From contig JADGIF010000012.1 in assembly GCA_018985225.1 (NCBI GenBank), positions 1 to 32,000 on the forward strand: a DNA stretch of 32,000 bases. The letters are read 5' to 3'. The translations under genes and the position numbers were made by a program. This DNA comes from Amoeboradix gromovi X-113 (taxonomy: Eukaryota; Fungi; Sanchytriomycota). This document shows positions 1,772-17,364 of this stretch, in pieces (position 1 is the first letter of the stretch; each line of letters starts with the position of its first letter). The notes beneath the pieces are model-generated. The model saw only the letters and a program-made list of their open reading frames with translations, did no database searches and had not been told where the DNA came from.

Positions 1772-4225
1772 ATGGAAGAGGATTTTAACCTAAATCCAAT
1801 TTTTAGCAAAGATGAATTACTCCAATTGAACACTGTCCTGGTTCTGCTTCCAACAAATGATGAAATTAAGCAAAAAATAAAACTGTTTATTGATAATTTG
1901 CTCCAAAGAGAAGCTTTTTTGTCTCAAAAAGTCTTTAATCTGCTGGAAAGTGCTGCTGCAAATGCCTTTGCAGAAAACAACATGGACTCAGCGGACTTGC
2001 AACGCAAGAATATAAAGTATCAAGCAGATTTGAACAAAGCTTGGAAACTATTGGAAATTGCACATGAAAGGGAGATAGAGCAGAACAATCATATAACAGA
2101 TCTTACTGCAAAACTAGACAGTGTTCATGCGAATGGCACAGATTTGCAGTTGCTAACGTTTTCTCAGGAAAATAAGGAATTGAAACTTGAAAGAAATGAT
2201 TTCTCTGAACAAGCTCGTCAGCTTTCAGAGGAAAAGTCTGAATTGACACAGAAGCTGTCGAAACTTGAAGAAACTATTCAAATCTCTACAGCGAATTCTT
2301 CGCAAAAAGAGAATGACTTTTCAGACGTTAGAAAAGCACTTAACCAAGTAGAATATGACCTTAATACAAGAGATACCGAATTGTCAAACTGTAAAATGCA
2401 ATCTGATTATAAGGATGTTGAGCTAAAAAATCGAAATGAGCAGCTTGGTTGCTTTAAAGATGAAGTAAAAAAAATTGAAAAGATTCTCGAAGACGAAAGA
2501 AGATTAAGAGACGTTAGTATTAAGGAATTAGAGATCTCTGCCAACACTATTAAAAAATTAGAATCACAAGTTAAAGCATTAAAGAAGGAAAAGTGTGAAG
2601 TTGAGAGTAAATTCAAAATTACGGAATTTGAAATGAAGACTCAAGAGAAGGAGTATGAACAGATTACTGCGGAAAAACAGGCTACTGATAGAATTAAAGA
2701 AAGTTTAACTAGAAAGATTCAGCATTTTGAGGCTAAACGAATGGAAATGAAACTTCAGTTGGATGCCAGAGAAGCTCAACTACTTAACGTGGAGAGACAA
2801 GCATTGGCATTGAAGGATGAAATGGTCTCGACAAAAGATGATAACTTGGTGCTAGCTAACTCAAATGCAAAGTTGAAAGTGACAAATATTGATTTGCAGG
2901 ACAAATTGAATAATTTGCAAGCTGTCATCCGAAAATTTGAACTAGATATCTCTAACCAAAAGAAGTCTTCTAAGACTTTCCAGGAAGAAGCTATCAAAAT
3001 GAGATTGCTAATCGAAGAATTTGAACAAAAACAAGACGATTATGAAATCAAAATGACTGGGAAAGAAAAGCAGCTGATGTCATTAAACGAGGATGTTCAT
3101 AAGCTGAAAAGTGAGTTGTGGGAGCAAGCACAAAAGACTGGTGAATTTAAGCGAAAACTGATGAATCAACAAAACTTGTACGAACAAGCTAGAAGTGATA
3201 GGAACAGATACGCAAAAGATGTAATGGATACCAGTGCTGAATTGAAGGACTCTCGAATCAAATTTGAATCTTACAATCACCAAATAAACCAGTTGGAGCA
3301 ACAGGTTCAGTTTAAAAGTGAGTCTTCTACTAAGGATCATTTTTCTTATTTAAAAGTTGTTAAGGAAAAAGAGAATTTAGTTCTAGAGATGGACCAGTTA
3401 ACTAGACAATACAAAACGTTAAAAGCAAAAATAGATGAGTTAAAATCAGAAAACCATTTGATAAATCAAACCTCGGCTGATTATTTTGCCGAGATTCAAC
3501 ACTTAACTAGTAAACTAAGTGATTCGGTGCATCGATCGGAATTACAGCAGCAGAACTTTAAAGAAAAATCAGAGCAAATTCTAAAGTACTCTGCTCACAT
3601 CGAGAGTTTAGAAATCCAGAATAATTCAACAGCTCAACTTGTAATCAAGAGTGACCTGGCTTTTAAGTTGTTGAAGGAAGAATTAAAAGGCAGCAAAAAG
3701 AAAATAAGGTCAATGGAACTACATGGAATGAACACAACAAAGCTACAGCAGGAAATACAAGAGTTGCAAAGGACTATCCTGAATGAGCAGTTGCGCAACA
3801 AGGCATTAGAGGAAGAGATGGAAAGGCCACAGAACTTACACAGATGGAGATCAATTCAAGCAGTAGATCCTGACAAGTTTCTGCTAATGGAAAAGGTGGC
3901 TGATTTGCAAAGAAGAACAATTAAAAAGGATGATGAGATATTAATCAAGACAGAAGAGAATGATAGATTGAGCAAGCTGAACGTTGATTTGAAAAAAGTC
4001 TTGTCAAAAGCACCACCGCCTGAGATTGCAAGCAATTTGGAGTTATTGAAATCAGTAGTTCAAAAAAAAACGGACGAGATTCACGCACTGGAATCAGAAA
4101 TTAAAATGTATAGAGATGACTTAAGTTTAAAAGACGCGGGGATTGAAGAGCTGAAGCTAAATATCACAGAATTAAAAACGAGATATTTAGTAATGAAGAG
4201 AAAAGTCAGAAGAGGATATAATTGA
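1772..4225 (+). CDS. CFAP58: cilia- and flagella-associated protein 58 (CCDC147), long coiled coil
   Basis: Coiled coil with the family motifs QQNLYEQARSDRNRYAK and KALEEEMERPQNLHRWR...DP...KVADLQRR. Confidence 0.85.
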   Translation: MEEDFNLNPIFSKDELLQLNTVLVLLPTNDEIKQKIKLFIDNLLQREAFLSQKVFNLLESAAANAFAENNMDSADLQRKNIKYQADLNKAWKLLEIAHEREIEQNNHITDLTAKLDSVHANGTDLQLLTFSQENKELKLERNDFSEQARQLSEEKSELTQKLSKLEETIQISTANSSQKENDFSDVRKALNQVEYDLNTRDTELSNCKMQSDYKDVELKNRNEQLGCFKDEVKKIEKILEDERRLRDVSIKELEISANTIKKLESQVKALKKEKCEVESKFKITEFEMKTQEKEYEQITAEKQATDRIKESLTRKIQHFEAKRMEMKLQLDAREAQLLNVERQALALKDEMVSTKDDNLVLANSNAKLKVTNIDLQDKLNNLQAVIRKFELDISNQKKSSKTFQEEAIKMRLLIEEFEQKQDDYEIKMTGKEKQLMSLNEDVHKLKSELWEQAQKTGEFKRKLMNQQNLYEQARSDRNRYAKDVMDTSAELKDSRIKFESYNHQINQLEQQVQFKSESSTKDHFSYLKVVKEKENLVLEMDQLTRQYKTLKAKIDELKSENHLINQTSADYFAEIQHLTSKLSDSVHRSELQQQNFKEKSEQILKYSAHIESLEIQNNSTAQLVIKSDLAFKLLKEELKGSKKKIRSMELHGMNTTKLQQEIQELQRTILNEQLRNKALEEEMERPQNLHRWRSIQAVDPDKFLLMEKVADLQRRTIKKDDEILIKTEENDRLSKLNVDLKKVLSKAPPPEIASNLELLKSVVQKKTDEIHALESEIKMYRDDLSLKDAGIEELKLNITELKTRYLVMKRKVRRGYN

Positions 4226-4551
4226 ATAAATCATTAATCGTGATTGCGTGAATTTTATCATTCGAGTATACCAACTTCTTTCTCTGATTGTACAAAAACT
4301 TGATGTTCTTTTTCGTTCTTGGCAAATGTCTACAAATCGCCACAGCCGGAAAATTTCAAATCTCATCAGACTGTTTCAATGGATTGCTGGTAGTACTTTT
4401 ATCCACCGAGTTCCCGGAAGTGTAATAAAACTATAAGCCGAGTATTCTTCACAGAATGTCTGCCAAGGAAATATAATCGACCCTTTTGACAGTAATAGTG
4501 TTTCCCTGATTTGGCAATTGCTATAAAATTAATTTGAGTTTTTTATGTAGT
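4214..4551 (+). mobile_element. decayed internally deleted IS607/Fanzor2-type element, copy 1
   Basis: 4214-4360 is about 88% identical (about 18 differences in about 148 nt) to the reverse complement of 5773-5920, and homology starts at GG. The left-end motif GAATAAATCATT and the GCAAATG start context (ATG 4326) are shared with copy 4. Decayed HTH-like peptide ..QWIAG..IHRVPGS. GTTTCCCTG...TTTATGTAG (4500-4550) resembles the right end of copy 3; this right end is the weakest part. Confidence 0.7.
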
Positions 4552-4576
4552 GTTCACAAATCACGATAAAAATAGT

Positions 4577-4596
4577 GATTGGTTGGCTCTGATTGG
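4577..4596 (+). promoter_or_regulatory. tandem reverse CCAAT boxes upstream of the SNARE gene
   Basis: GATTGG at 4577 and 4591, about 50-65 nt before ATG 4644. The same motif occurs before other genes in the window. Confidence 0.45.
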
Positions 4597-4643
4597 CTAC
4601 AATCACTAGGAAAGTAATTAAAATGCAGTGAGCACCTTTTCTT

Positions 4644-5393
4644 ATGACCAAAGGAACGAGTAGTAGACATTCTCAACGTGCAAGTAGTAAAATCTCAGAC
4701 AAATCTCGTTCTCATCGGCCAGCCAGTGAAAAAGACGAGATTGAGTTTATGAAAGACAGGATTAATGTTACAAAAGAGAAGAGCTTAGACTCGTCCAGAA
4801 GTACGCGAAGAAGATTAGAGGAGAGTGAGAGAATGGCTGCGTTAAACATGTCTAATATAAGTGATCAAAACGACAAACTAACACATATTGAGCATAACAT
4901 GAATATTGCTGATCTACACACAGACAAAGCAATCAATAAAACAGAGCGACTTGAGCAATTGAACAAAAATTTTATAACTTCAGCGGCAAATCCTCTGAAA
5001 TATTATCACAACGCAAAGCACAATAGCAGAAACAAAAAACATGATGCGAAAGAAAAAGAACTAAAAGGTGCAGAAATCCAAAGTCCAAGTTCTACATTGA
5101 GAGATAAAAGAGAGCAAATTTACAACTCTTCTGGAGATAGGAATAAAAGTAGTTCGGGCAGACGCGGCCGTCAGCAGTTGCTAGATGGTGAAGAACACTG
5201 CCCAATTGAAAGAGAAATTGACGAAAATGTCGAATTTATGAGTGGGTCCATAAGCAGACTTAAGCAGATGGCACTAGCTGTAAATGAAGAGGTATCATCT
5301 CAGAATCAACGTATTAAGAACATCAGCTCTGCTTCTGATTCTGTACAGAGTAAAACAGTAAGAACGGAAAGGAAATTAAAGAAATTTTCTTAG
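4644..5393 (+). CDS. SEC9: Sec9/SNAP-25-family Qbc-SNARE
   Basis: Two SNARE heptad domains (SLDSSRSTRRRLEESE...DQNDKLTHIE and IEREIDENVEFMSGSISRLKQMALAVNEEVSSQNQRI) and no transmembrane segment. Confidence 0.85.
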   Translation: MTKGTSSRHSQRASSKISDKSRSHRPASEKDEIEFMKDRINVTKEKSLDSSRSTRRRLEESERMAALNMSNISDQNDKLTHIEHNMNIADLHTDKAINKTERLEQLNKNFITSAANPLKYYHNAKHNSRNKKHDAKEKELKGAEIQSPSSTLRDKREQIYNSSGDRNKSSSGRRGRQQLLDGEEHCPIEREIDENVEFMSGSISRLKQMALAVNEEVSSQNQRIKNISSASDSVQSKTVRTERKLKKFS

Positions 5394-5420
5394 TTAAAAT
5401 AAAAATATTTAAGGTCAAGT

Positions 5421-5920
5421 GTTAGTTAAAGGTCTTGGTTTCCTAATAGTAAAGAATTTCCACAAAGAGTGTAATATTGCTCTGTTTTGCCTGTAACTGA
5501 AAGTAACTGTGCCCACTGCCATATGGTCTCATCTCTTGCGTTTAATAATTCGGCGCCTGGGACGCCTTAAACAATCGCAGCTTCTTTTTCAAAATCATCT
5601 TGCTGTTTATTAGGTCAGACTCTCGCACATACGATTATCTCTTGAGGAATTTGTAGAAATATCAAAAAACTCATAAATGCCTTGTAAATGGAATGTATCT
5701 ATTTAACGATGTGGATGAATGTCGAACAGTTCATTTAAAAGAGCATCCTAGACTGCTTGCCGGTGTTTTGAAATGTAAAATATTCCGGCTGTGGCGATCT
5801 GCGGACATTTGCCAAGAACGAAAAAAGAACATCAAGTTTTTACACAATCAGAGAATGAAGTGGGTATACTCCAACGATAGAATTCACGCAATCACGACTG
5901 TGATTTATTCAATTGTATCC
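5421..5920 (-). mobile_element. decayed internally deleted IS607/Fanzor2-type element, copy 2
   Basis: Minus-strand order: GG left end (5920), ATG 5808, serine-recombinase motif (5641-5582), GAC CAT ATG GCA = DHMA of Fanzor RuvC-III (5528-5517), then right end CTCTTTGTGGAAATTCTT...GGAAACCAAGACCTTT aligning with copies 3 and 4. Confidence 0.85.
5545..5808 (-). pseudogene. tnpA: IS607-type serine recombinase (TnpA) pseudogene fragment
   Basis: Reads EIIVCARV*PNKQQDDFEKE...PGAELL versus the family consensus YARVSS.KQKDDLERQ...P..EII. TGT, TGA (5615-5617) and CCT are each one substitution from TAT (Y), TCA (catalytic S) and TCT (S). Confidence 0.8.
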
Positions 5921-6354
5921 CCGAACCATACCAGTATAAGTACGTAATCAGTTATTGAAAACTATGAAGACCTCATAGCCATAATTTATGAATGGCAGAC
6001 TGAAAGTAAAAGCAGGTCACAAAATTCAATGTTGACGCTAAGTTTTCGGATGTTCGAAAGCCATTAAAGACTTTCCAGTAGCGAAGTACCCAAGTCCTTC
6101 GAAGAACTACATCAAAAAATCACGGCAAGCACCAGCAAGTTCAAGAAAGGTGAAGATTGTGCGTAGAATCACGCTAGGAAGACTTGGCTACAAAATTGAA
6201 GTTTTATGGAAGAGATATAGCCAACAGCGAATATAAATAAGATCGTGCACGATAAATAAGTGGTCTTTATGCTAAACCGAATTTGCCTTTTCGAGATATT
6301 TATTTTAGCTATTATTCATAGAGTATATCCTCTGTTTCTTAATTGTGGCGAATG

Positions 6355-6364
6355 ATTGGCCAAT
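6355..6364. promoter_or_regulatory. palindromic double CCAAT box ATTGGCCAAT
   Basis: Located 38 nt upstream of the YEATS2 ATG. Confidence 0.45.
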
Positions 6365-6401
6365 GCCAAAAAATTGCAAACGCGAAGCCCCAAACAAATA
6401 A

Positions 6402-7951
6402 ATGGACCAAAGTACATACATTCTACCAGACCCGCTGGGTCGTCTTCGGAGAGTCGTAGATCAGGAATTTAATCTGGAAACTCTTTTGATTCATAAGGAT
6501 CTCTTTGAATTGAATCAGTTGGAAGATAGGGTTCAATATTTGCTGGACGAATCTTCTAAGCCCAACGCATCACCTATCAGCGTTGTAACCCATTCTCCAA
6601 CTATAAATAATAGAAGGCCTAGTAGTGCAGTTATTTTCCAGGATACTAATGGGAAATACTTGTTGTTGTCTTGCAATATATGCGCTAGAACCAACTTCAC
6701 GGATGTCCAAGGACTAATCAACCATTGTAGATCTGCCCATAGCATAACTATAAGCACTACTAGGCAAGCCATTTCTGAATGTGCTAATGTGTTAGACTTT
6801 GTTCCAGAGGGCGCTGAAGTCCATCAACTGCAATTTGCTACAACGCTACCAAGCAACTCGAATAATGAATCTAGAGTTCAGTCTCCTCAGCAAGCAGATG
6901 ATGGTAGAATGAAGCGTGGTGCTATAGAGCTACCAAGTCTAAAATTAAAAATTGCAAACACATCGTTATTTTTTATCAAAAAGAAGATTCTTATTGGTAA
7001 CATTAATCAGTTTATAACACCTGACAAACGAGCGCTAAACTATGAAAAGTGTGCTTATAGGTGGCTTATTTATGTCAAAACAAAGCATCCTGTGGATATT
7101 ACAACTTTTGTAAAAAAAGTCAGATTCTTTTTACATGGGACTTATAAACCAAATGAAGTAGTAGACATCAATAGACCACCTTTTTATATCACTAGATTAG
7201 GATGGGGTGAGTTTATAGCCAGGATTCAGATCTATTTTCATGATAGCAGGAATCAGCCGATTGACATTCCTTATCATTTGAAGTTAGACCAGCAAACTAC
7301 TGGTAAAGAGTTATTGGGGGATGAAAGGCAATACGAACTGCACCTGGATCAAAATACTGTATTTAATGACCCTGTACCCTTTAAAGGTAGCGACAAAGTA
7401 AATCAAGTCCTTAGCAGTGAAGCGATAGCTCAAATTATGGATAGTCCTGTTCTATCCTCTCCCGTGGCAGTAATACCCAATCAATCCAATTGCTTTGCAT
7501 GCGGTGGTCATTGCAATTGCACGGTTCCAACTCATTTATATCCAGCTGTAGCAGAAGAATTTCAATATCTAGATGCCAAGACTACCCAGTTGCTAAGAAA
7601 CACTAGCAACGTTGTACCAAGCAACTCTATCCGTACACCAACCGTCGTAGTGGATCTAAATGAAATTAAAGATATAGCCATGAGAATGACCTCTAATTCA
7701 ATACACGATGGAGCGATTGTACTATTAGCAGCTGTAATTTCATACTAATTTAGGCAACTAAACTATTTGTAAATAATTTGATATCCAATGTACTTTTGCA
7801 TGCCAAGAATAATGTAATAACAACTTTAATGATTCCTCCTGCTATAAAGAACATTGAATCTTATGATTTCTTATCAACAAAATCATTATATCTCCCAACA
7901 CCGCCTCAAAAGGATAAGGAAAAGAAGGCTGACATAATGGATTTAACTTAA
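6402..7951 (+). CDS. YEATS2: YEATS2-like protein (Ahc1-type C2H2 finger + YEATS + C-terminal histone fold); join(6402..7733,7754..7951)
   Basis: YEATS domain FVKKVRFFLHGTYKPNEVV..PPFYITRLGWGEF with YEATS2-type flanks (KKILIGN..ITPDKR; HLKLD..TG.ELLG.E). Finger CNIC..FTDVQGLINHCRSAH. Splicing adds ATKLFVNNLI...AIKNIESYDFL, a histone-fold-like end. Confidence 0.9.
7734..7753 (+). other. 20-nt spliceosomal intron GTAATTTCATACTAATTTAG
   Basis: GT-AG ends, branch site TACTAAT, phase 0. Removal deletes a stop and adds a 65-aa conserved-looking C-terminus. Confidence 0.85.
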
Positions 7952-7967
7952 TAATAAATTATTTACT

Positions 7968-8077
7968 CCTGACATAAATTCTTGCTTTCCTGTAATATCA
8001 AGAACTTTCACAGGGAAACCGGAAGCCTCAGTCAATCAGTTTAAGCAGCTGCTTACTCTTTAACTACCCATGGGTAG
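7968..8077 (-). ncRNA. putative Fanzor omegaRNA scaffold (right end of copy 3)
   Basis: Non-coding, directly after the RuvC-III remnant. Stems CTACCC/GGGTAG, AGTA/TGCT, GACTG/CGGTT and AAGTTCTTG/CAAGAATTT; the AGTA/TGCT and GACTG/CGGTT stems covary with copy 4. Expression unknown. Confidence 0.55.
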
Positions 8078-8342
8078 GAATAGATACGTTTGCTTAATCA
8101 GCAGTATATTCCAGCAATATGGTCTCTTTATACCTTTAAATGACATTTTGTAGATGGGTATGACTTCAAGATGCTTTTTATACTTGACCGCGTACTACAC
8201 GTTTGTTTAGTAAACACTTTGCTAATTTCAGTCATTAACCCTAACAATAAAAGAGAAACGAGCATGTATTCATTCAGAGAACATTAAAGAGCAGGGCAAT
8301 TTGAGAAATAGAATTCATATAGTCACGGCAAATGATTTATTC
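7968..8342 (-). mobile_element. decayed internally deleted IS607/Fanzor2-type element, copy 3
   Basis: Left end GAATAAATCATTTGCCGTGA (from 8342). Remnant from 8235 reads MTEISKVFTKQTCST...STKCHLKV*RDHIAG, homologous to copy 4 (FTSKICTR...CTKCHLKIDRDHMAA). Right end aligns without gaps to copy 4 (64/102 nt) and ends in AGG. Confidence 0.85.
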
Positions 8343-8344
8343 GA

Positions 8345-11300
8345 TCAAAATCGGTTACCTTGTTGCACAATCTTTAGTATACTCTTTAAACATTTAAACA
8401 GCATTACCCTTGTGTCTTTTGGAATCTCTATCTCTTGGTACTCCAAGATGTTTATTATCGTTGACATTAATCCAGTCATCTGCGTTAGCAATCCAGGTTT
8501 CTTGGATTTAATCCAATACCCTTTGCAATTTACTACGTATTCCAATACTATCATAATTCCTTGTGTTGTTGTTCTACGTTAGTATTTGTTTACTCTTTTA
8601 CTGGGATTGTTCTATTGTCTATCAACTCCAAATAGTACTGCTTGCATTGCTCTATCACTCTATTTAGAAGCCTATCATGTAATAGAGTCATTTGCTCATC
8701 TGTTAGTAAACTGGTTGTAAACAAAAACAGACTTTTTAGTGCTTCCAACTCTATCATGTCTTTACTTTGCTCTATGTCCCCGTTGTTGTATTTTAATCCT
8801 ATTGATTTGTAAAATGCTTCTTTATCTTCTCCCTTGTCTTTATCATTAGTTATTAAATAATCCAGTCCTATCATCCATTCTCCAATAATTGATCCGCTTA
8901 AATACCCATCAAGTACCAATGATTTAACATGGCTGCTCAGGGTATTTATATGCTGGCAATCGATTATATCGTCTGCTATTTGCAATACCATATATTCCTT
9001 ATACTTGTCAGGCAGTTTAGGCTCACTTTGAATGTATTTGTGGAACGATTTTAGCGTCATTTGCCATATGATTCCAATAGGTAACTTTTTAGAGGATTTT
9101 TCTCTTGTTATCGTTGCCAAGCTGTCCACAAATGCCATAAATCCTTCCAAGGCTACCTTCCATCTGCTTATACTGTTCATATATATCTTCATGATTTCCT
9201 TGTAATCCACAACTACCTCCATATCCGCAGTGTATTTAGTGTCCAATATCATTCCAATAATATCAAAGTAAGTTTCAATGATTTTTATGATATCAGGACT
9301 TGTCATTATCTTGTCTATTTTATTGTTAACTACTTTTATTAGCAGTTCTGTTATTAAACTTCCATTTCCTGCACTTATACTATCATTTTTGCTGTCTACC
9401 AGGACATACATCATCTCCAGCCACGGGATCATTTGGTGATCCATCCCGTATATAAAATGCATCCCTATCAATCGCTGTAGCGGCAACAGCTTGTTTAATT
9501 CCTTGCTGTATCCAACAACTATGTCGTTTAGATTGTTTGTGTTCACGCCAAATTCCCTTTTCAACATTAAATCGTGGTCCAATGCATATTTGTATATAGT
9601 GATTACTTTTGCAGCTATTTTGCTACTGTGGTCATTGCTACCAGGTTGCTTGTCTATATTATATACTGAGTATAACAATAGTTCCAGATAATATGTCAAT
9701 GCTTCTTGATTCTGATTTTCTAGCTCAATATTCAGGAGCTCTCTTACGTTACTAGTGCAAAACATACTGGTTATATTTCTGTCTTGTGCACTGTTGTTTC
9801 CCATGTCCATAATTAATATAATCCAGTATTTCAACAGTTGTACAAACACATCATTGTCTGCTGTATATCCCACAATCTTACAAATTACTTTGTTGTAGAA
9901 TTCATACACGAGTGGTATCCACTCATTACAATTGTCATTCCTTATTCCCAATATACCCTTGCCCGCAATTAATTCTCCGATAAACTTTAGCAAATTCTCT
10001 ATGCAAACTATTTGCACATCTACACAGTCTGCTTGCCATGTGGATTTAATCAATTCATCGTTCACTACTCCGAGTGCTGGTGGAACTGTAAAATCGTTGC
10101 TGAACACTCCTTCAAGTAGTTGCGCCAGAATATTTATATATTCGCTAAACGTAGATGCGCTAAATACAGATTCAAATTGCCTGCTAAATATCTTGATTGT
10201 GGTTTGTATGGATCCTACGCAAGTAGCCTTGTGTTTGATTAACGACTGTCGGCAAAGTGATTCTAATATCTTGAATTTGCACATGGAGAGCGAGGCAGAA
10301 GCATCCACCGCAGTGTCTGTAGTGCCTGTCAGCCTGTTCAAATGATCCATCAAATTCCAGTACCACGTAGTAGCCATATATGCAATGTTAGATTGCTTAT
10401 TACTTGCAAATCGCTCTATTACCTGTAACCATTTTAATATCAGGTTTGTTGTTGTCAGATTATCCAGATATTCATTATCAACCATACTTGCAAACTCAAA
10501 TAGCAGGGTGCTTGGATCTAGTACACTAGTGGTGCTTATAATAAAGCTGAACAGCTTACTATCAGTAATCTTGATTAACTGATTAAAAAGGGTTATGAAA
10601 TGGTTTTGAATATTCATGGGATTTTCTGACAGCACTTTCTTGTATCCATCAATGTAAGCATCAATGATTTCGCTGTTGTGATTTTCAACATTGTAACACT
10701 CGAACAAGAATAGATGAGTATAGACAGTAAATACAGACTGAAATACATCCAAATCAGTCATCAAAGCCATATTCTCACTAGAAAGCTTGATTAGTTTATT
10801 GATGTTACCATTTGGCTTTCTGTATTCAATTAACAGATAAGCAATCAATAAATCGGTAGAAAGAGTGACAAATAAGGTGTCAAACTGGGCAATTACAGTA
10901 TCCAGATAGTTTGGATGGATATAAAGCGCAAAAAGCGCGTTTGTGAGTAATCTGATAATCGATGAGGAACTTGTAAAGAGTAATGATGGTTTGATATCCA
11001 AATTAAATGATTTGGAGTGATTAATAGCATCCATGTATATCTGGCTTACCGGCTGGTTGTATTGACTGTTAATAATAGATTCCAAATGGTTGTTGCTGCT
11101 TATAACAGTGGCTATATTATCATTTGGACTATTTAAAGCACTGTTATAAGGGCTATTAATTGTGCTAGTAGGGCGACTTAATACACTGCTAGGACGAGTA
11201 TTAGTGGGAATGCATGCACAGATATTACTGCTTGTTAATAAAATCAGTTTATAAATGTTTTCATGATTGGGAACTACGGCGTGTATTAGTAGCAACGCCA

Positions 11301-12771
11301 TTGATAGATTAATTAGATCTCCAGTGTTAGCAATAGTGTTAGGAAAGATATCCATTATTAGCGCATCTGAATTAGTAATCGATTTGACTTTGAATAAGTA
11401 CTCATAATACATTTTAATTATATCAGTATATAATGGACACTGGTTATTATTAATCGTTAAAAGAGACTTGTAGTACTCGAGATAATCACTGTAAACTGGC
11501 AAAAGCATGGCAGAGTTGAAAGATTCAGGCAATTTGTCGAGTATACGTATAGAGATGGTAATCATATAATGCATGGGCAGTTCAGGTACATTATTGTCTG
11601 CTAAGTGGTCGATGTATAGCTGCTTGCTAGGTATTAGACTAAACTGATCATGACCGTAATTGGAAACAAAGGCATTAATTAGTTTAAAGCATAAACTACA
11701 ACAAGAGCCAACAACGTTTAGGGTAAATGACTCAGATATAAGATCGTAAAGACTGGCTATTAGTGGGGTATTGCAAACCAATTTATAGATTGCCTCAAGA
11801 GATAAAGAAGCTAAAATAACTGAGGAATCTAAAGATATAGTTTTGAATAGCATAGACAGTAATAATTCAGATTCAGTCTTTAATGTATCATGAAAAGAAG
11901 TAATCAGCTGAACGACAAGTAAAAGCGTACGAATAGCAATCGGATAAGGACACATTTCTTTTACCGAGTCACCAAACAACTGGATTATGGTTTTGCTAAA
12001 TGTAGCCAACAATTTAGTAAAATGTAAATTGTGAAGTTTCACCGAACAGTTAGTAAATATCAATTTGGTTATTTCTAGACCTAGCGACCGGGGTATCGGA
12101 GTTAAATATTTTAAATTGTATTCTACGTTTCCTACAATGTACATGACATCTTCCAGTACATCGTATGCTGTATTATCAGGGCACTTTTCAACAAAATTGG
12201 CAACAATTTGACGATAGGTGGCCCAGGCACTAGAAGTGACTAGTGAATCAATTTTCATAGACACTGGTATGTTCCATGATTCATCGCTAGGATGCTTAAA
12301 AGAAGCATTCAGATTTATCTGAAGCAGTTTATGCATTAGCACACATATCTGATGCATTGCAGCTGGAGACAACTCAAGTGCATAGAGATCAGAGCACGGC
12401 AGAGCAACCTGCACTAGTTTTAATTGCATTTCTTGCAAAAGATTGGCCTGTGAGCTGAAGAAACCACCGACATCCGCGCGCAAACAGTTGTGAAGCCAGA
12501 TGATGCATTCCTCCGCTAGTGCTACTTCAATTAATTTATAAGATATCATTCTTAGCAGAATAGTGAGTGCTAATATATTGGTTTTCGGCTGATTGAGTTG
12601 GAAAGTCTTTTGAAGTACAGCTTTCGCAGAAGATAGATTTTTTTGTTCTTGTCGTAATTCATAGACACATTGCTCTGCCGCTTCCTTAATATCCAGAAGC
12701 CTCCTTTTCTTAGCTTCATTCGACAAACTGGCTAAGTCTTGCTGTAAAAGGGTAGAACTTGCTAATGACAT
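8345..12771 (-). CDS. MON2: Mon2 (Sec7-related HEAT/DCB endosome-Golgi scaffold); complement(join(8345..8573,8594..12771))
   Basis: N-terminus LLQQDLASLSNEAKKRRLLDIKEAAE is the Mon2 signature, followed by a long helical solenoid. First ATG is 12771. A 20-nt intron joins it in frame to ORF 8345..8554. Confidence 0.8.
8574..8593 (-). other. 20-nt spliceosomal intron GTAAACAAATACTAACGTAG
   Basis: GT-AG ends, perfect TACTAAC branch site, phase 2. Restores the frame (..PVKE-TTTQGIMIVLEY..). Confidence 0.85.
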
Positions 12772-12915
12772 GAAAAAGTATTTGAGCTTCTGTTTCAACT
12801 TTTAATACAGAAAACTGAAAATACAAAATGTAATACTACTGCCCAAATAAGCAACAGAAAGAGCTCTTATAATGGCAGGTATGGAACGCTATTCTGTAAA
12901 TTGCTTCATATAATA

Positions 12916-13803
12916 ATGCTTCACCAAAATGTAGGTCACTTTCTGATGCAACAAGTTGCGAAACATTTTTTTGACATCTGGAACACATTGCAGCCAAATG
13001 ACAAACTCAGTGAGTTGCATGTAGGTACACCGGCAGCTCAGTTGAGGCCTGATCTGCAAGAACTTTACACATACTTTATAAGGCAGCTGGAATCAAATGA
13101 AGAGATTACAGTGCTTGATTTAGAACATTTGCAAGGCAAGCAGGCTGCTTTTAAACAGAAGCTGATTGATGAGGAAAATAGTTACCTTGAAGTAAAAAAA
13201 TCTCACGAAGGTATTCTATTTGAGCTAGGAATAGAGATGGAGAGTATTCAAGCGGAGATGAAAAGCTCAATTTTTAAGGAAAAAGCCTACCAAGAAAACA
13301 CAAAAGTTATACTGCAGTTGTGCAGCAATGAACTAGAAAATTTCAAAACTCAGTTTGACGCAAGTAGCAGTTTAAAAATCATAGAAGCGACTAAATTATA
13401 TAAGGAACTCACCTTGGCAAATGAAGCTCAAATGCAAGAATGGATTGAAAAAAGACAGCGCATTCAAAAGGAAATAAAAGAGTGGGAGTCCAGGTATATG
13501 ACTGAGACAGATCTTAATTCATCAAATATCTTCTTGTTGAAATCGCAGTTGTTGCAGCTGAATGAAGATTATGATAAGCTGAATGCAAATCTCTCAGAAA
13601 TCACACCAGTATATGATAAAATTTTGTTTGATAAAGATGAGCAAGGTAAAATTGATTTTCAGGAGAGGCTATTATATTTATCACAGACAATCGCGGCTAA
13701 ACGAATACAGTCCACATGGAAACAATATAAGTCCCGTAAAACAGCAAACGCAAAGCCAAAATCGTCCAAAAAAGCTAAAAAAGGAACAAAGAAAAGCAAA
13801 TAG
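12916..13803 (+). CDS. DRC10: dynein regulatory complex subunit 10-like (IQCD); start uncertain
   Basis: Coiled coil, IKEWESRY motif, IQ motif AAKRIQSTWKQYKSRK and a Lys-rich tail. First in-frame ATG is 12916; alternatives are 12946 or a spliced ATG at 12872. Confidence 0.65.
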   Translation: MLHQNVGHFLMQQVAKHFFDIWNTLQPNDKLSELHVGTPAAQLRPDLQELYTYFIRQLESNEEITVLDLEHLQGKQAAFKQKLIDEENSYLEVKKSHEGILFELGIEMESIQAEMKSSIFKEKAYQENTKVILQLCSNELENFKTQFDASSSLKIIEATKLYKELTLANEAQMQEWIEKRQRIQKEIKEWESRYMTETDLNSSNIFLLKSQLLQLNEDYDKLNANLSEITPVYDKILFDKDEQGKIDFQERLLYLSQTIAAKRIQSTWKQYKSRKTANAKPKSSKKAKKGTKKSK

Positions 13804-13893
13804 TATTTAGCTATCTAATAAACTATTTTTAACTTAAACTTTGGGCTAAATCTTTTTATTTATTTTGCGTTACTATGTGCAGGCCAGTGAAAA

Positions 13894-15648
13894 ATGAATT
13901 TGCTGAAAAAAATTAAACTGGGCTTGGATAGAATGAAGGACAGAGTGATGGAAATGATGAACTGCAGAAAGACCAGGGTTGAAGAAGAAGGGATAATTTC
14001 AAAGAAAGAATGCATTTCGCATGGTGCCGCAGTTGATGCATTTGCTGGTGACTGCAGGCCTGTTTTTGCTAGAATATCACCCAAGAATCCCAAGCTTATC
14101 ATGAAGTCCACAAACAATAGATGGAAAACTAAGCGCGTTACTGAAGGCTCGACTCTAACTGAGTTCAGCACTTACATAATTGCCGATTATGAGTTGAAAA
14201 AGGATCGCAACTCTGTATCCAGATCATCACCTTACAAAAACGCCAATGCTGCAGAATCTACCAAGTTTGGGGCCATTGGAATCTCGATAGAGCCTGAGAA
14301 ACATGAAAATGATACAGAATTGCATTTTTCTCTAGTCAATACATCAATAGTGGACAATAATAAGAGCTTTGAAGTTAGATCATTGGATCCTGGTGTTACC
14401 AACGAGAAAGTTTCAGGGCTCTTAAACATATCAGACCACTCTGAAAACATAGTACTTGCATATGACAATCACTACTTCAGAAAAGTTGACTCCCGGAATT
14501 TGGCGTGTGAGGAGACGATTCTGCATAACTCAGTTGTAAATTGCTTGTTTTTGAGCAAGCAGTCAGAATCCATGGACTCGCTAGTTGAAAAGTACTTGCA
14601 TATGGGATACAAAGAGAGCATTAAAAGCTTTTGTTTTACTGTACCTATAGAAATGGAGAGATTCAGTTCCACAAAACTTCTATTTCCATGTGCTACTAAT
14701 AAAAGTGCCATTTCTGATTCCTTCCCATTTTGTAGAGAAAATACAGAGATGGTTGAGTCAAATGATATAAATAAGCAAGAACCAGTAGAAATGCCGAAAG
14801 GTTTTGGTTTCTCAACTATTTCTAATACACACTCAGCATTTCCACCTTTGTTGAAAAAAATGAACAGTAATGAAGAGTTTAAATTTAGCAAAGAGCAACT
14901 AGCTGATGAATTATTCCTGCCTGCACTAGTTCACCCAGGAAACAAGGCGGTGCACAAAAAGAATTGGGGTGATGATCTTGGCGAGAGTATCTTAAGGTGC
15001 CCCAATAATAATGAAAAAAGTAGGGTCTTAGAGAATTTGAAAGGTGAAAATTGTGATTTATTGAATCTTAATGAGGTAAAATCGGAAGATAGCTTGGGGT
15101 ACGTGCTGGACGCGGAAGGGTTATCTATAGAGATCGAACCACGTTCTGAACTTGAACCAAACGCTTCAAACAAAATTTGCTGCCAGCCTGTAAAACAATA
15201 TGTGAGATCAGCATTACGTTATAGCATATTTGTCAATAGCGACCGCGCCAGAGAGGAAGAAATTTGTCCGAAAGTTGAAGTTCGATCATTAAAAATATCA
15301 AAATTCAATTTACCCCCACTGCGGACCAGAAACGAGTTCTTTGAAAGTGGATCCAAAGGCAGCACCATAAAAGAGCCCCATAGATTGGAAAACTCTTCCC
15401 ATACCGATAGAGCACCAGAGTTCTTTCCCTTGCATCTTTATAATTACACTGCAGTCAAAACCAAGTATACTGATATGGGGCTGTTGCAAAACTGTCTCTT
15501 AAATGCATTTTGTCTCCAAATGGAATCACACAAGCTAGATGAAGACAACCTGGCCCTTCGAGGAATTTGTTTCCGAAATCTCGCATATAGTCTGATGGTA
15601 ATGGAAGAAGAGTCTACTCCTCTAGTTATGGACGACTATTATACTTGA
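13894..15648 (+). CDS. hypothetical protein (584 aa, S/E/K/N-rich, no recognised domain)
   Basis: 1.75-kb uninterrupted ORF in AT-rich DNA with an AAAATG start context. Confidence 0.7.
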   Translation: MNLLKKIKLGLDRMKDRVMEMMNCRKTRVEEEGIISKKECISHGAAVDAFAGDCRPVFARISPKNPKLIMKSTNNRWKTKRVTEGSTLTEFSTYIIADYELKKDRNSVSRSSPYKNANAAESTKFGAIGISIEPEKHENDTELHFSLVNTSIVDNNKSFEVRSLDPGVTNEKVSGLLNISDHSENIVLAYDNHYFRKVDSRNLACEETILHNSVVNCLFLSKQSESMDSLVEKYLHMGYKESIKSFCFTVPIEMERFSSTKLLFPCATNKSAISDSFPFCRENTEMVESNDINKQEPVEMPKGFGFSTISNTHSAFPPLLKKMNSNEEFKFSKEQLADELFLPALVHPGNKAVHKKNWGDDLGESILRCPNNNEKSRVLENLKGENCDLLNLNEVKSEDSLGYVLDAEGLSIEIEPRSELEPNASNKICCQPVKQYVRSALRYSIFVNSDRAREEEICPKVEVRSLKISKFNLPPLRTRNEFFESGSKGSTIKEPHRLENSSHTDRAPEFFPLHLYNYTAVKTKYTDMGLLQNCLLNAFCLQMESHKLDEDNLALRGICFRNLAYSLMVMEEESTPLVMDDYYT

Positions 15649-16541
15649 AATAGGTTTAGTCAAATTTCAATGAGAAATGGTCCACAAACTGGAAAACCCC
15701 ACTAATCAAATGTATTGCGTACAAATGTCCTATATTATATCATTTGCGCTTTTGGCGGCAGCTCGTTGTTACCGATCCTCTACTTTCAGTCTAACCTCAA
15801 GAGCAAGCAAATCAGGGTCCTTGTATCAACTGCATACACTAGTTTCCTGCTCTGGATACCGCAGTGGTCTGTTGGTGTGCGTCTACAGTTTTTGTGACCG
15901 TAATAAATCATATTTTACCAATTTGTTTTAGCATGCTGTATAGATCCCATGCACCCACAATCTGAGCTACGTCATTTTAGTATCATACTGTACAAGATCC
16001 AAGATCGTAGCGAGTGCATCTATTTTCACAGGCTTTCTGAAGTTGCACTCCAGGCCAATTAAGCAGCATATCTATCAGCATTTGTGTCTGTTGTTTTAGT
16101 GCTGCGTGTGACATCTTGGTCTATGACGAACGCTGAATTTGATACCTCTGTAAACCCACCTCCATGTTGTTTGCAAAATCCTGTAAAACAACGGCAATGA
16201 TGCCATAAATTGGCCAACTATTGGTTACTCAGACATTCAGCTGAACACATGCACTCATCTAGCTCCCCTTTCCAAACTGGACATATTGAGGGAACAAAAA
16301 GTCACCCACAGACTCGGCTTTACCATCGGGACTGGTTGCATCGTTTCTTTCATAATTAGGCTTTAGTTCTCCTGAACATTTTGTTTTCTTGACACTCTTA
16401 GTTGAATTATTTGTGGTGATTAAGTTGGTATAGGTTAAATAACTGAGAATGTGGTTGACGAAACAAGGGTTGACATAGGTCTGCCTCATGTGTGACCAAC
16501 AGGGATGAATTACTTAGATTCAGAAGATTTATGCCATTGCT

Positions 16542-16666
16542 CCTCGCTAAAAGTCCTGATTTCCGAGAAAATCGAGAATTTCCACAGAGAATCTAGCAAA
16601 GCTAGATGCTCCGTTACAGTGGCTGGTCACTCTTGCAATACCCTGAGGCGGGGTTGAATAAGGGTA
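16542..16666 (-). ncRNA. putative Fanzor omegaRNA scaffold (right end of copy 4)
   Basis: Stems TACCCT/AGGGTA, AGTG/CACT and ACGGAG-C-ATCTAGC-TTT-GCTAGAT-T-CTCTGT (16614-16584). Position matches known TnpB/Fanzor omegaRNA loci. Confidence 0.6.
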
Positions 16667-16669
16667 CAT

Positions 16670-16988
16670 ATACCTGATGTATATGTTCCTTGCTGCCATA
16701 TGATCTCTATCTATCTTCAAATGACACTTTGTACAGGTTCAGGTTTCTAAATTAGTTTTCTTTAGAGTGGCATACCTTGTACATATCTTACTAGTAAATG
16801 CATCATTATATTCAACCATCGTCTTTCCTCTTTGTTTGCACTTGAACTTCAAGCGTTCTTTGAATAAATTGTGCAGATATCTTATAGGCATTGAAAGACA
16901 ACTAATTTTCCCATGTTTGCACCAGTTCCTCAACGTTGATGAATGTATGCTGTGCCTGCTAGTTATTTCTTTAGAATTGATTTACCAT
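16670..16988 (-). pseudogene. deletion fusion of TnpA N-terminal HTH and Fanzor2/TnpB C-terminus
   Basis: One frame reads INSKEITSRHSIHSSTLRNWCKHGKISCLSMP (MerR-like HTH of IS607 TnpA) then YLHNLFKERLKFKCKQRGKTMVEYNDAFTSKICTRY...LET*TCTKCHLKIDRDHMAARNIY (H..FK.RL..K, E.(Y/F)TSK.C, CxxC and DRD..AARNI motifs of Fanzor2). Confidence 0.9.
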
Positions 16989-17364
16989 TTGCGAAAAGGA
17001 AGAATATCGAGTGTTTAAGGTATTAGAAAAATCTGGAAAAGTCTTGAAATTATACAAAAATGCATACAAATTCGCGATAAATGATTTATTCAAGAAAACA
17101 ATCGAGCTGTACTCAAATAAAAAGGATCTTCTATAATCCCCGTAATTGATCTAAAATGAGTCTCTTAGGGCCCCAATAGTGAGAAAGTCTTGCATGTACA
17201 TATTTGGAATAGATCTCTATTTTTATCATAAGATGTTCATGTAATTTTCTGGAACTTACAGTTTATGAGATTTGAAGGCATTTACCTTTATATGGTATCT
17301 TTTTACAGTTTCTTAATGGTCATTTGTATTGGTATCACCAAATGATACTGACGTACGAAACAAG

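Follow-up and report, generated by a model that had tools for sequence, protein, structure and literature searches.

The first 32,000 nucleotides (nt) of contig JADGIF010000012.1 of the algal-parasitic sanchytrid fungus Amoeboradix gromovi X-113, hereafter the window, contain four pieces of an IS607-type mobile element, whose intact forms carry the serine-recombinase gene tnpA together with the gene of the RNA-guided nuclease Fanzor2. These pieces are very probably fossils of a lineage-specific burst of such a tnpA+Fanzor2 element, and are now decaying neutrally. The first-pass annotation of the window had proposed a dense, unannotated and non-autonomous IS607/Fanzor2 family, and this assignment is supported by profile matches, intact tnpA+Fanzor2 relatives, a phylogenetic tree and dozens of sister fragments in the genome. 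The pieces occupy about 5% of the window, at a density of roughly one left end per 8 kb. The kind of element is already known; notable here are its density, the amplified deletion forms and the capture of host stop codons. They point to a hitherto undescribed case in which a prokaryote-type serine-recombinase element with Fanzor2 invaded a cellular eukaryote at unusual density, in a genome that has been presented as reduced.

Four copies and their ends

The left end is marked by the 10-mer GAATAAATCA, which occurs exactly four times in the window, at 4224 on the plus strand and at 5910, 8342 and 17091 on the minus strand, against an expectation of 0.24 per shuffled window and a maximum of two in 300 shuffles. 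Behind this motif, ~140-190 nt show homology in each of the four pairs of copies tested (0/300 shuffles each), and copies 1 and 2 are 88% identical across 153 nt, which bears out the claim of four related copies with a common left-end motif. The longer pattern that had been given for this end, GAATAAATCA..CG.GA, is matched literally (with a gap of 1-4 nt) by copy 2 only. The right ends are homologous among copies 2, 3 and 4 (0/300 shuffles for copy 4 with copy 3 and for copy 4 with copy 2, 2/300 for copy 3 with copy 2), but the 'weaker' right end ascribed to copy 1 is at shuffle level: its alignments to the three other right ends were equalled by 33-52% of shuffles, nhmmer found no match in it, and no coding remnant of copy 1 rose above chance against TnpA and Fanzor profiles. 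A right end or TnpA remnant at 4391-4551 looked suggestive by eye and was rejected, as it did not exceed shuffles. No fifth copy was detected in the window by hidden Markov model (HMM) or nhmmer. No inverted repeat links both ends of a copy among the inverted repeats listed, and the two ends are unrelated by inspection.

The four copies stand with corrected boundaries. Copy 4 is a 569-bp deletion derivative on the minus strand (16540-17108), which runs from a probable AG core at 17107-17108 to a terminal AG at 16540-16541 and has its left-end motif at 17082-17091. Copy 3, a diverged deletion derivative (7966 to ~8359, minus strand), has the motif at 8333-8342, and its right end finishes in AGGAG at 7966. 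Copy 2 (~5419 to 5927, minus strand; motif at 5901-5910) is a deletion derivative of the copy 1 subfamily, in which ~70 nt of the omegaRNA (guide RNA) region including the pseudoknot loop are gone and the last ~6 nt of the right end mismatch, being decayed or lost. Copy 1 is, judging from these alignments, a left-end fragment on the plus strand (~4207/4214-4390); its homology with copy 2 starts at 4214, and by the register of the family its AG core should fall near 4208-4209. The DNA formerly taken as the rest of it (4391-4551) has no significant match to right ends or TnpA/Fanzor profiles. Retention of both ends plus the omegaRNA region, which had been assumed for all copies, is therefore complete in copies 3 and 4 only, since copy 1 has no right end and copy 2 lacks the ~70 nt.

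Remnants of TnpA and Fanzor2

Peptides from the copies match IS607 TnpA and TnpB/Fanzor profiles above shuffles, and the remnants that had been read into copies 2, 3 and 4 are recovered. Copy 4 keeps the TnpA helix-turn-helix (HTH), which scores 15.4 bits on a TnpA HMM (0/200 shuffles) and is 51% identical to the TnpA of the metagenomic contig L003 (E 1e-12), together with a Fanzor C-terminus including zinc finger and RuvC-III (PF07282, E 2.8e-5 and 1.9e-4). Copy 2 keeps the TnpA catalytic motif (7.4-10.1 bits, 0/200 and 0/300 shuffles) and copy 3 a zinc-finger/RuvC-III remnant (28.8 bits, 0/200 shuffles). The IS607 TnpA architecture of HTH plus serine-recombinase domain is thus present as remnants in different copies, the HTH in copy 4 and the catalytic part in copy 2, and in both the gene order is left end, tnpA remnant, Fanzor remnant, right end.

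All of these remnants lie on the minus strand and are visibly damaged, copies 2 and 3 being further decayed than copy 4. The tnpA start and N-terminal HTH of copy 4 occupy 16880-16988, where a ~25-nt deletion has put the ATG (16986-16988) out of frame with the HTH (16880-16981). The junction J1 of a ~1.3-kb internal deletion follows at 16865-16873, and then the Fanzor2 C-terminus (16547-16864) with a change of E to D at the alternative RuvC-II site, one zinc-finger C changed to Y, an internal stop codon (16739-16741) and RuvC-III; the Fanzor2 tail within this interval overlaps the omegaRNA and ends at the stop codon 16547-16549. The catalytic-motif remnant of copy 2 (5573-5647) contains a stop codon, and a frameshifted, DRDHMA-like RuvC-III motif (5514-5533) is followed by the ~70-nt deletion that removes the pseudoknot hairpin. 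In copy 3 the remnant (8110-8235) has acquired a stop codon and lost cysteines and the alternative catalytic glutamate.

From its predicted sequence, the nuclease bears the Fanzor fingerprint described for these enzymes (PMC10711439), that is, an alternative RuvC-II glutamate and, in the intact relatives, a DPG motif. The glutamate, six residues ahead of the first zinc-finger CxxC, is present in 34 of 35 sister open reading frames (ORFs) of A. gromovi and in the related protein P0376, and is mutated in copies 3 and 4 themselves. The DPG motif (RuvC-I) has been deleted from every A. gromovi fragment seen and is present in the nearest intact relatives. An unrelated metagenomic contig (L004:263-685) encodes a similar in-frame fusion of a TnpA HTH to a Fanzor C-terminus (P0138, 140 amino acids), so this type of deletion seems to arise independently.

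Intact relatives and origin

An intact tnpA+Fanzor locus, which the first-pass annotation had suggested looking for and placing in a tree, was found in metagenomes, and the tree could be built; the best-scoring matches in the predicted proteome of A. gromovi included none. In the intact relatives L003 and L083/L089, tnpA overlaps Fanzor2. The TnpA of L003 scores 170 bits on NF033518 (cut-off 110) and overlaps a 604-amino-acid nuclease; at this locus (L003:3146-4967) the 240-amino-acid tnpA ORF lies nearly all inside the Fanzor ORF in another frame, and the gene caller missed it. The closest intact relative, from pond metagenomes, is a ~1.9-kb element on contigs L083 (100-1988), L084 and L089, with two different left flanks and a perfect predicted pseudoknot. 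Its nuclease is 66% identical in amino acids to an A. gromovi sister fragment, and at the DNA level the L083 element and copy 4 are 64% identical over 236 nt, with ~1.3 kb missing from copy 4.

A tree of 77 C-terminal regions places the A. gromovi rows in a single group, nested with P0376, P0135 and P0141 (supports 99/94 and 100/99) and apart from the cyanobacterial pro-Fanzors; with 125 columns and a midpoint root, the tree names no donor. L001 and L003 look virus-like by gene content, which suggests a possible viral vector. A ~1.9-kb element with a serine recombinase TnpA and Fanzor2 would probably have entered the A. gromovi lineage by horizontal transfer. Searching the family peptides against viral and metagenome contigs returned no loci, phage records gave distant TnpB matches only, and Rfam had no match.

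Amplification of deleted forms

In EukProt, entries from A. gromovi stand nearest to the copy 4 peptide. The best 120 of 189 matches in a profile search include at least 41 short clusters with A. gromovi-style names (102-166 amino acids), and at least ~54 sister ORFs of 99-166 amino acids were counted in all (41 clusters plus 3 plus 10 cluster members; 22 confirmed by accession). Copies lacking a long open frame escape this count, which therefore understates the true number, and the genome-wide copy number is estimated in the hundreds. Dozens of annotated A. gromovi 'proteins' would accordingly be debris of the element.

Junction J1 of copy 4 recurs in 13 sister ORFs, and at least three other junction types exist. 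Since 13 ORFs show one and the same junction, the deleted forms appear to have been mobilised as such and amplified after the deletion. Such amplification calls for both ends together with a trans-acting transposase, and would by itself explain why right ends were retained. Internal deletions would have produced short derivatives with both ends, which an intact TnpA acting in trans could have excised and re-inserted by a 2-bp crossover, probably at AG, and a few deletion forms would have been amplified in the manner of miniature inverted-repeat transposable elements (MITEs). The common junctions are direct sequence evidence for the mobilisation of non-autonomous copies by an IS607 TnpA in a fungal nucleus. 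The family also appears dispersed and diverged, as indicated by short matches of ~40 nt across contigs: when contigs were aligned to 4000-8600, six others matched the copy 1 left end from 4219 and further ones matched parts of copy 3, and no near-identical copies of copies 1-3 were found in other contigs at ≥80% identity beyond patches of ~45 nt.

The autonomous element would now be absent or unassembled. No full-length A. gromovi Fanzor is among the best 120 of 189 profile matches in the predicted proteome, and the best 120 of 861 matches to a TnpA profile that included the A. gromovi HTH contain no intact TnpA from this species. The assembly weighs against reading these negatives as loss: it was made from amplified sporangia, is fragmented into 1167 contigs and was reduced from 48.7 Mb raw to 10.5 Mb cleaned (PMC8371127), so that an intact copy, if repeated or similar to bacterial DNA, may have been collapsed or filtered out. 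It is conceivable, though unlikely, that the family still moves at a low level and that the copies observed represent the older stratum of a continuing invasion, its intact master having been lost from the assembly in this way. Some sister ORFs indeed differ by only ~5% from the majority sequence, and 22 fall in or near clusters of >90% identity. Against such continuing mobility speak the failure of copies 1-3 to find near-identical partners, the star-like distribution of private changes (123 of 174 derived states are singletons) and the lack of any fragment longer than 166 amino acids among the ~54 ORFs listed.

Neutral decay of the protein fragments and of the omegaRNA

Comparison of the sister ORFs indicates that the protein fragments decay neutrally, because key residues change as fast as other positions: catalytic and zinc-finger residues were altered in 42 of 420 cases (10.0%) versus 134 of 1529 (8.8%) elsewhere (p 0.44), the majority sequence of the 124-amino-acid fragment serving only as a counting reference. 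All key residues are kept in only 9 of 35 sister ORFs, and zinc-finger cysteines are changed in 23 of 140 cases. The tail that encodes the omegaRNA is no better conserved than the core (7.4% versus 9.0% changes, p 0.20). Two observations count against neutrality, though both come from rows that had been selected by the RuvC-III motif itself: the RuvC-III aspartate is unchanged in 35/35 ORFs, and changes are slightly fewer in the last 16 codons (5.7%, p 0.04). All of these rates compare the sister copies as proteins only, with amino-acid change as a proxy for DNA change.

The retained right-end region is, by its predicted folding and pairing, the omegaRNA, but a decaying one. In three intact relatives a predicted pseudoknot of 5/5 pairs joins the first hairpin's loop to the bases just ahead of the terminal AG, and it shows compensatory changes. 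Over five sequences only, 90% of cells in this pseudoknot are paired, a value reached by 6 of 500 shuffles, and slid controls gave 28-55%. Such a pseudoknot is required for an IS607 TnpB (PMC10711439). In copy 4 the decayed omegaRNA scaffold spans 16540-16655 (minus strand), and the loop of its first hairpin (16641-16652) pairs with 16542-16546 at 4/5 positions; copy 3 keeps 2/5 pairs, and the hairpin of copy 2 is deleted. Folding z-scores are -3.2 for L001, -3.2 for L083 and -1.4 for L003, all intact, and between -1.3 and +1.5 for the window copies, which show no excess folding.

The first-pass annotation had suggested that the copies could be a dispersed reservoir of guide RNAs. That they are living omegaRNA loci, which serve an intact Fanzor2 elsewhere in the genome and have their right ends under selection, is very unlikely. 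Copies 3 and 4 do keep a full-length scaffold region finishing in AGGAG, the hairpins of copy 4 are still recognisable, in Spizellomyces, ghost omegaRNAs that have no ORF are active together with their Fanzor1 (PMC10432273), conservation is slightly higher in the last 16 codons, and a master copy may be hidden by the assembly. But the nuclease to be guided is missing from the proteome matches mentioned above, the pseudoknot, mismatched at one pair in copy 4, is broken in copy 3 and deleted from copy 2, the omegaRNA tail enjoys no preferential conservation, and copy 1 has no right end at all. Furthermore, the retained part usually carries 100 or more codons of protein remnant, for which a guide has no use. 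As long as an intact Fanzor2 was present, RNA from the right ends could have guided it to empty sites; since then, all copies including their omegaRNA would have decayed neutrally. The genome offers a natural test of whether ghost omegaRNAs are retained after nuclease loss, and the present answer is no.

The notion that the short HTH::zinc-finger/RuvC-III fusions or the ~125-amino-acid C-terminal ORFs are domesticated or regulatory proteins, for which one might cite the in-frame junction of copy 4 and several sisters, the annotation of at least ~54 such ORFs and the similar fusion P0138, is hardly credible in view of the zinc-finger and key-site changes counted above and of the internal stop and disconnected start codon of copy 4.

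The core dinucleotide

IS607 inserts at GG (PMC6188088), and a GG core had been assumed for this family as well. A GG rule was rejected because AG fits better, and AG is probably the family core. Five right ends, those of copies 3 and 4 and of three intact relatives, share an invariant AGGAG. At the left, CAG occurs in copy 4 and at the loose ends of other contigs, its AG lying 17-16 nt ahead of the motif, and two contigs of the L083 element part from one another immediately before CAG. AG thus stands at both ends of copy 4 and of the L083 element, and L083 and L084 have the same left register. At variance with this core are the GG found at the predicted left position in copies 2 and 3 and the one-base shift of the AG in copy 1, and no empty site was seen. 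For the intact relatives L083/L089 and L003, which are candidate Fanzor2 systems, a scaffold is predicted and the target-adjacent motif is probably CAG-like.

Left ends as host gene ends

The stop codons of two host genes, CFAP58 and, by prediction, a MON2-like gene, sit inside left ends of the element. The TGA of CFAP58 (ORF 1772-4225, plus strand) is at 4223-4225 within the left end of copy 1 and overlaps an AATAAA hexamer; the protein finishes six residues past the conserved coiled coil, and solved orthologues mostly have ~40 more. The predicted TGA of the MON2-like gene is at 8345-8347 (minus strand) within the left end of copy 3, and closes a last exon at 8573-8345; in this model the frame across the intron was read locally and the exons were searched separately, so that the spliced protein is a prediction only. 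No solved MON2 relative was found for a C-terminal comparison. The intron itself (8574-8593, minus strand) is a 20-nt GT-AG intron with a CTAAC branch site, and micro-introns of this kind seem to occur in further genes of the window. Copies 2 and 4 point away from putative start codons at 5992 and 17156.

No targeting is needed to explain this capture of stop codons, as harmless insertions would simply have survived: where genes are densely packed, an insertion would persist only in a short intergenic gap or at the very end of a coding region, within its last codons, and in two of the four cases here the AT-rich left end supplies the host gene with a stop codon and an adjacent AATAAA. Host stop codons in the window also adjoin AATAAA-like words. 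A more far-reaching proposal, which we regard as tentative and rather doubtful, is that the left end, with stops in several frames beside AATAAA, resembles the host's own gene ends and acts as a portable gene terminator. This could have let a prokaryote-type element reach hundreds to ~1000 copies in a reduced 10.5-Mb eukaryotic genome by way of the last codons of genes, rewriting many C-termini and 3' untranslated regions that would now depend on element ends.

Relation to known systems

Fanzor2 genes in IS607-like elements (PMC3627910), as well as ORF-less ghost loci including Fz2 ghosts, their guide activity and the guide-repertoire hypothesis (PMC10432273), have already been published, and the same holds for stand-alone Fanzor RNA (fRNA) copies and for genomes with as many as 122 copies of Fanzor (PMC10530073). 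The A. gromovi family resembles the IS607-like Fanzor2 elements (ACa-1/-2, ISvMimi_1/2 and the ApmFNuc locus; PMC3627910, PMC10530073) in its tnpA with an N-terminal HTH overlapping Fanzor2, the glutamate six residues before the zinc finger, the DPG of the intact relatives, a right-end RNA that overlaps the ORF end and the lack of terminal inverted repeats. It differs from them in that only deleted or decayed copies were found in A. gromovi, in its density in the window, its probable AG core and its sanchytrid host.

Ghost loci have been reported from Spizellomyces punctatus (134 loci) and also for Naegleria lovaniensis and Mercenaria mercenaria Fz2 (PMC10432273), and like the copies described here they are ORF-less or ORF-broken and keep both ends plus the omegaRNA region. 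The S. punctatus ghosts differ in having inverted repeats, 19 intact partner genes and omegaRNAs that are strongly conserved (PMC10432273), whereas the A. gromovi copies are of the IS607 type and have protein remnants, damaged scaffolds and no detected partner. With the prokaryotic IS607 and pro-Fanzor elements (IS607, IS1535, ISXfa1; PMC6188088, PMC10711439), the family would have in common a 2-bp crossover without target duplication and a pseudoknot that joins the loop of the first hairpin to the final bases of the scaffold. In contrast to these, it resides in a eukaryotic nucleus between intron-containing genes and belongs to a clade separate from the cyanobacterial pro-Fanzors. In MITEs and other non-autonomous derivatives, a few deletion forms are amplified in trans far beyond their autonomous parent, and their ends can be exapted as gene termini; the A. 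gromovi element departs from MITEs in having no inverted repeats and a serine recombinase rather than a DDE transposase.

Genomic setting

The paper on the A. gromovi genome makes no mention of repeats or transposons (PMC8371127), and A. gromovi is not named in the supplements of the two published Fanzor surveys that were searched. The window is gene-dense, with a GC content of 36%, and includes the eukaryotic genes CFAP58, YEATS, peptidase M3 and the MON2-like gene. Contamination as the source of the copies was ruled out, as a single contig carries them between eukaryotic genes.

The nearest named relative of the window M3 peptidase is that of Sanchytrium tribonematis (60%); L002, a sanchytrid-like metagenomic contig of 32 kb from ENA, encodes one that is closer (71% identical). 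No element copy was found in L002 over 19.6 kb of non-syntenic sequence, too little DNA for dating the invasion. A probable small multi-exon gene without a long ORF lies at 5992-6260 (plus strand), and its start is ~65 nt from the left end of copy 2. A 584-amino-acid ORF without a Pfam match (13894-15648, plus strand) and the adjoining 15650-16500 form a stretch of slightly higher GC content (40-42%) next to the right end of copy 4. At 12901-13803 a flagellar-type IQ-motif coiled-coil protein was recognised by inspection. Flagellar-type genes (CFAP58 and the IQ-motif coiled-coil gene) have thus been kept, though the zoospores of the host bear a non-motile pseudocilium.

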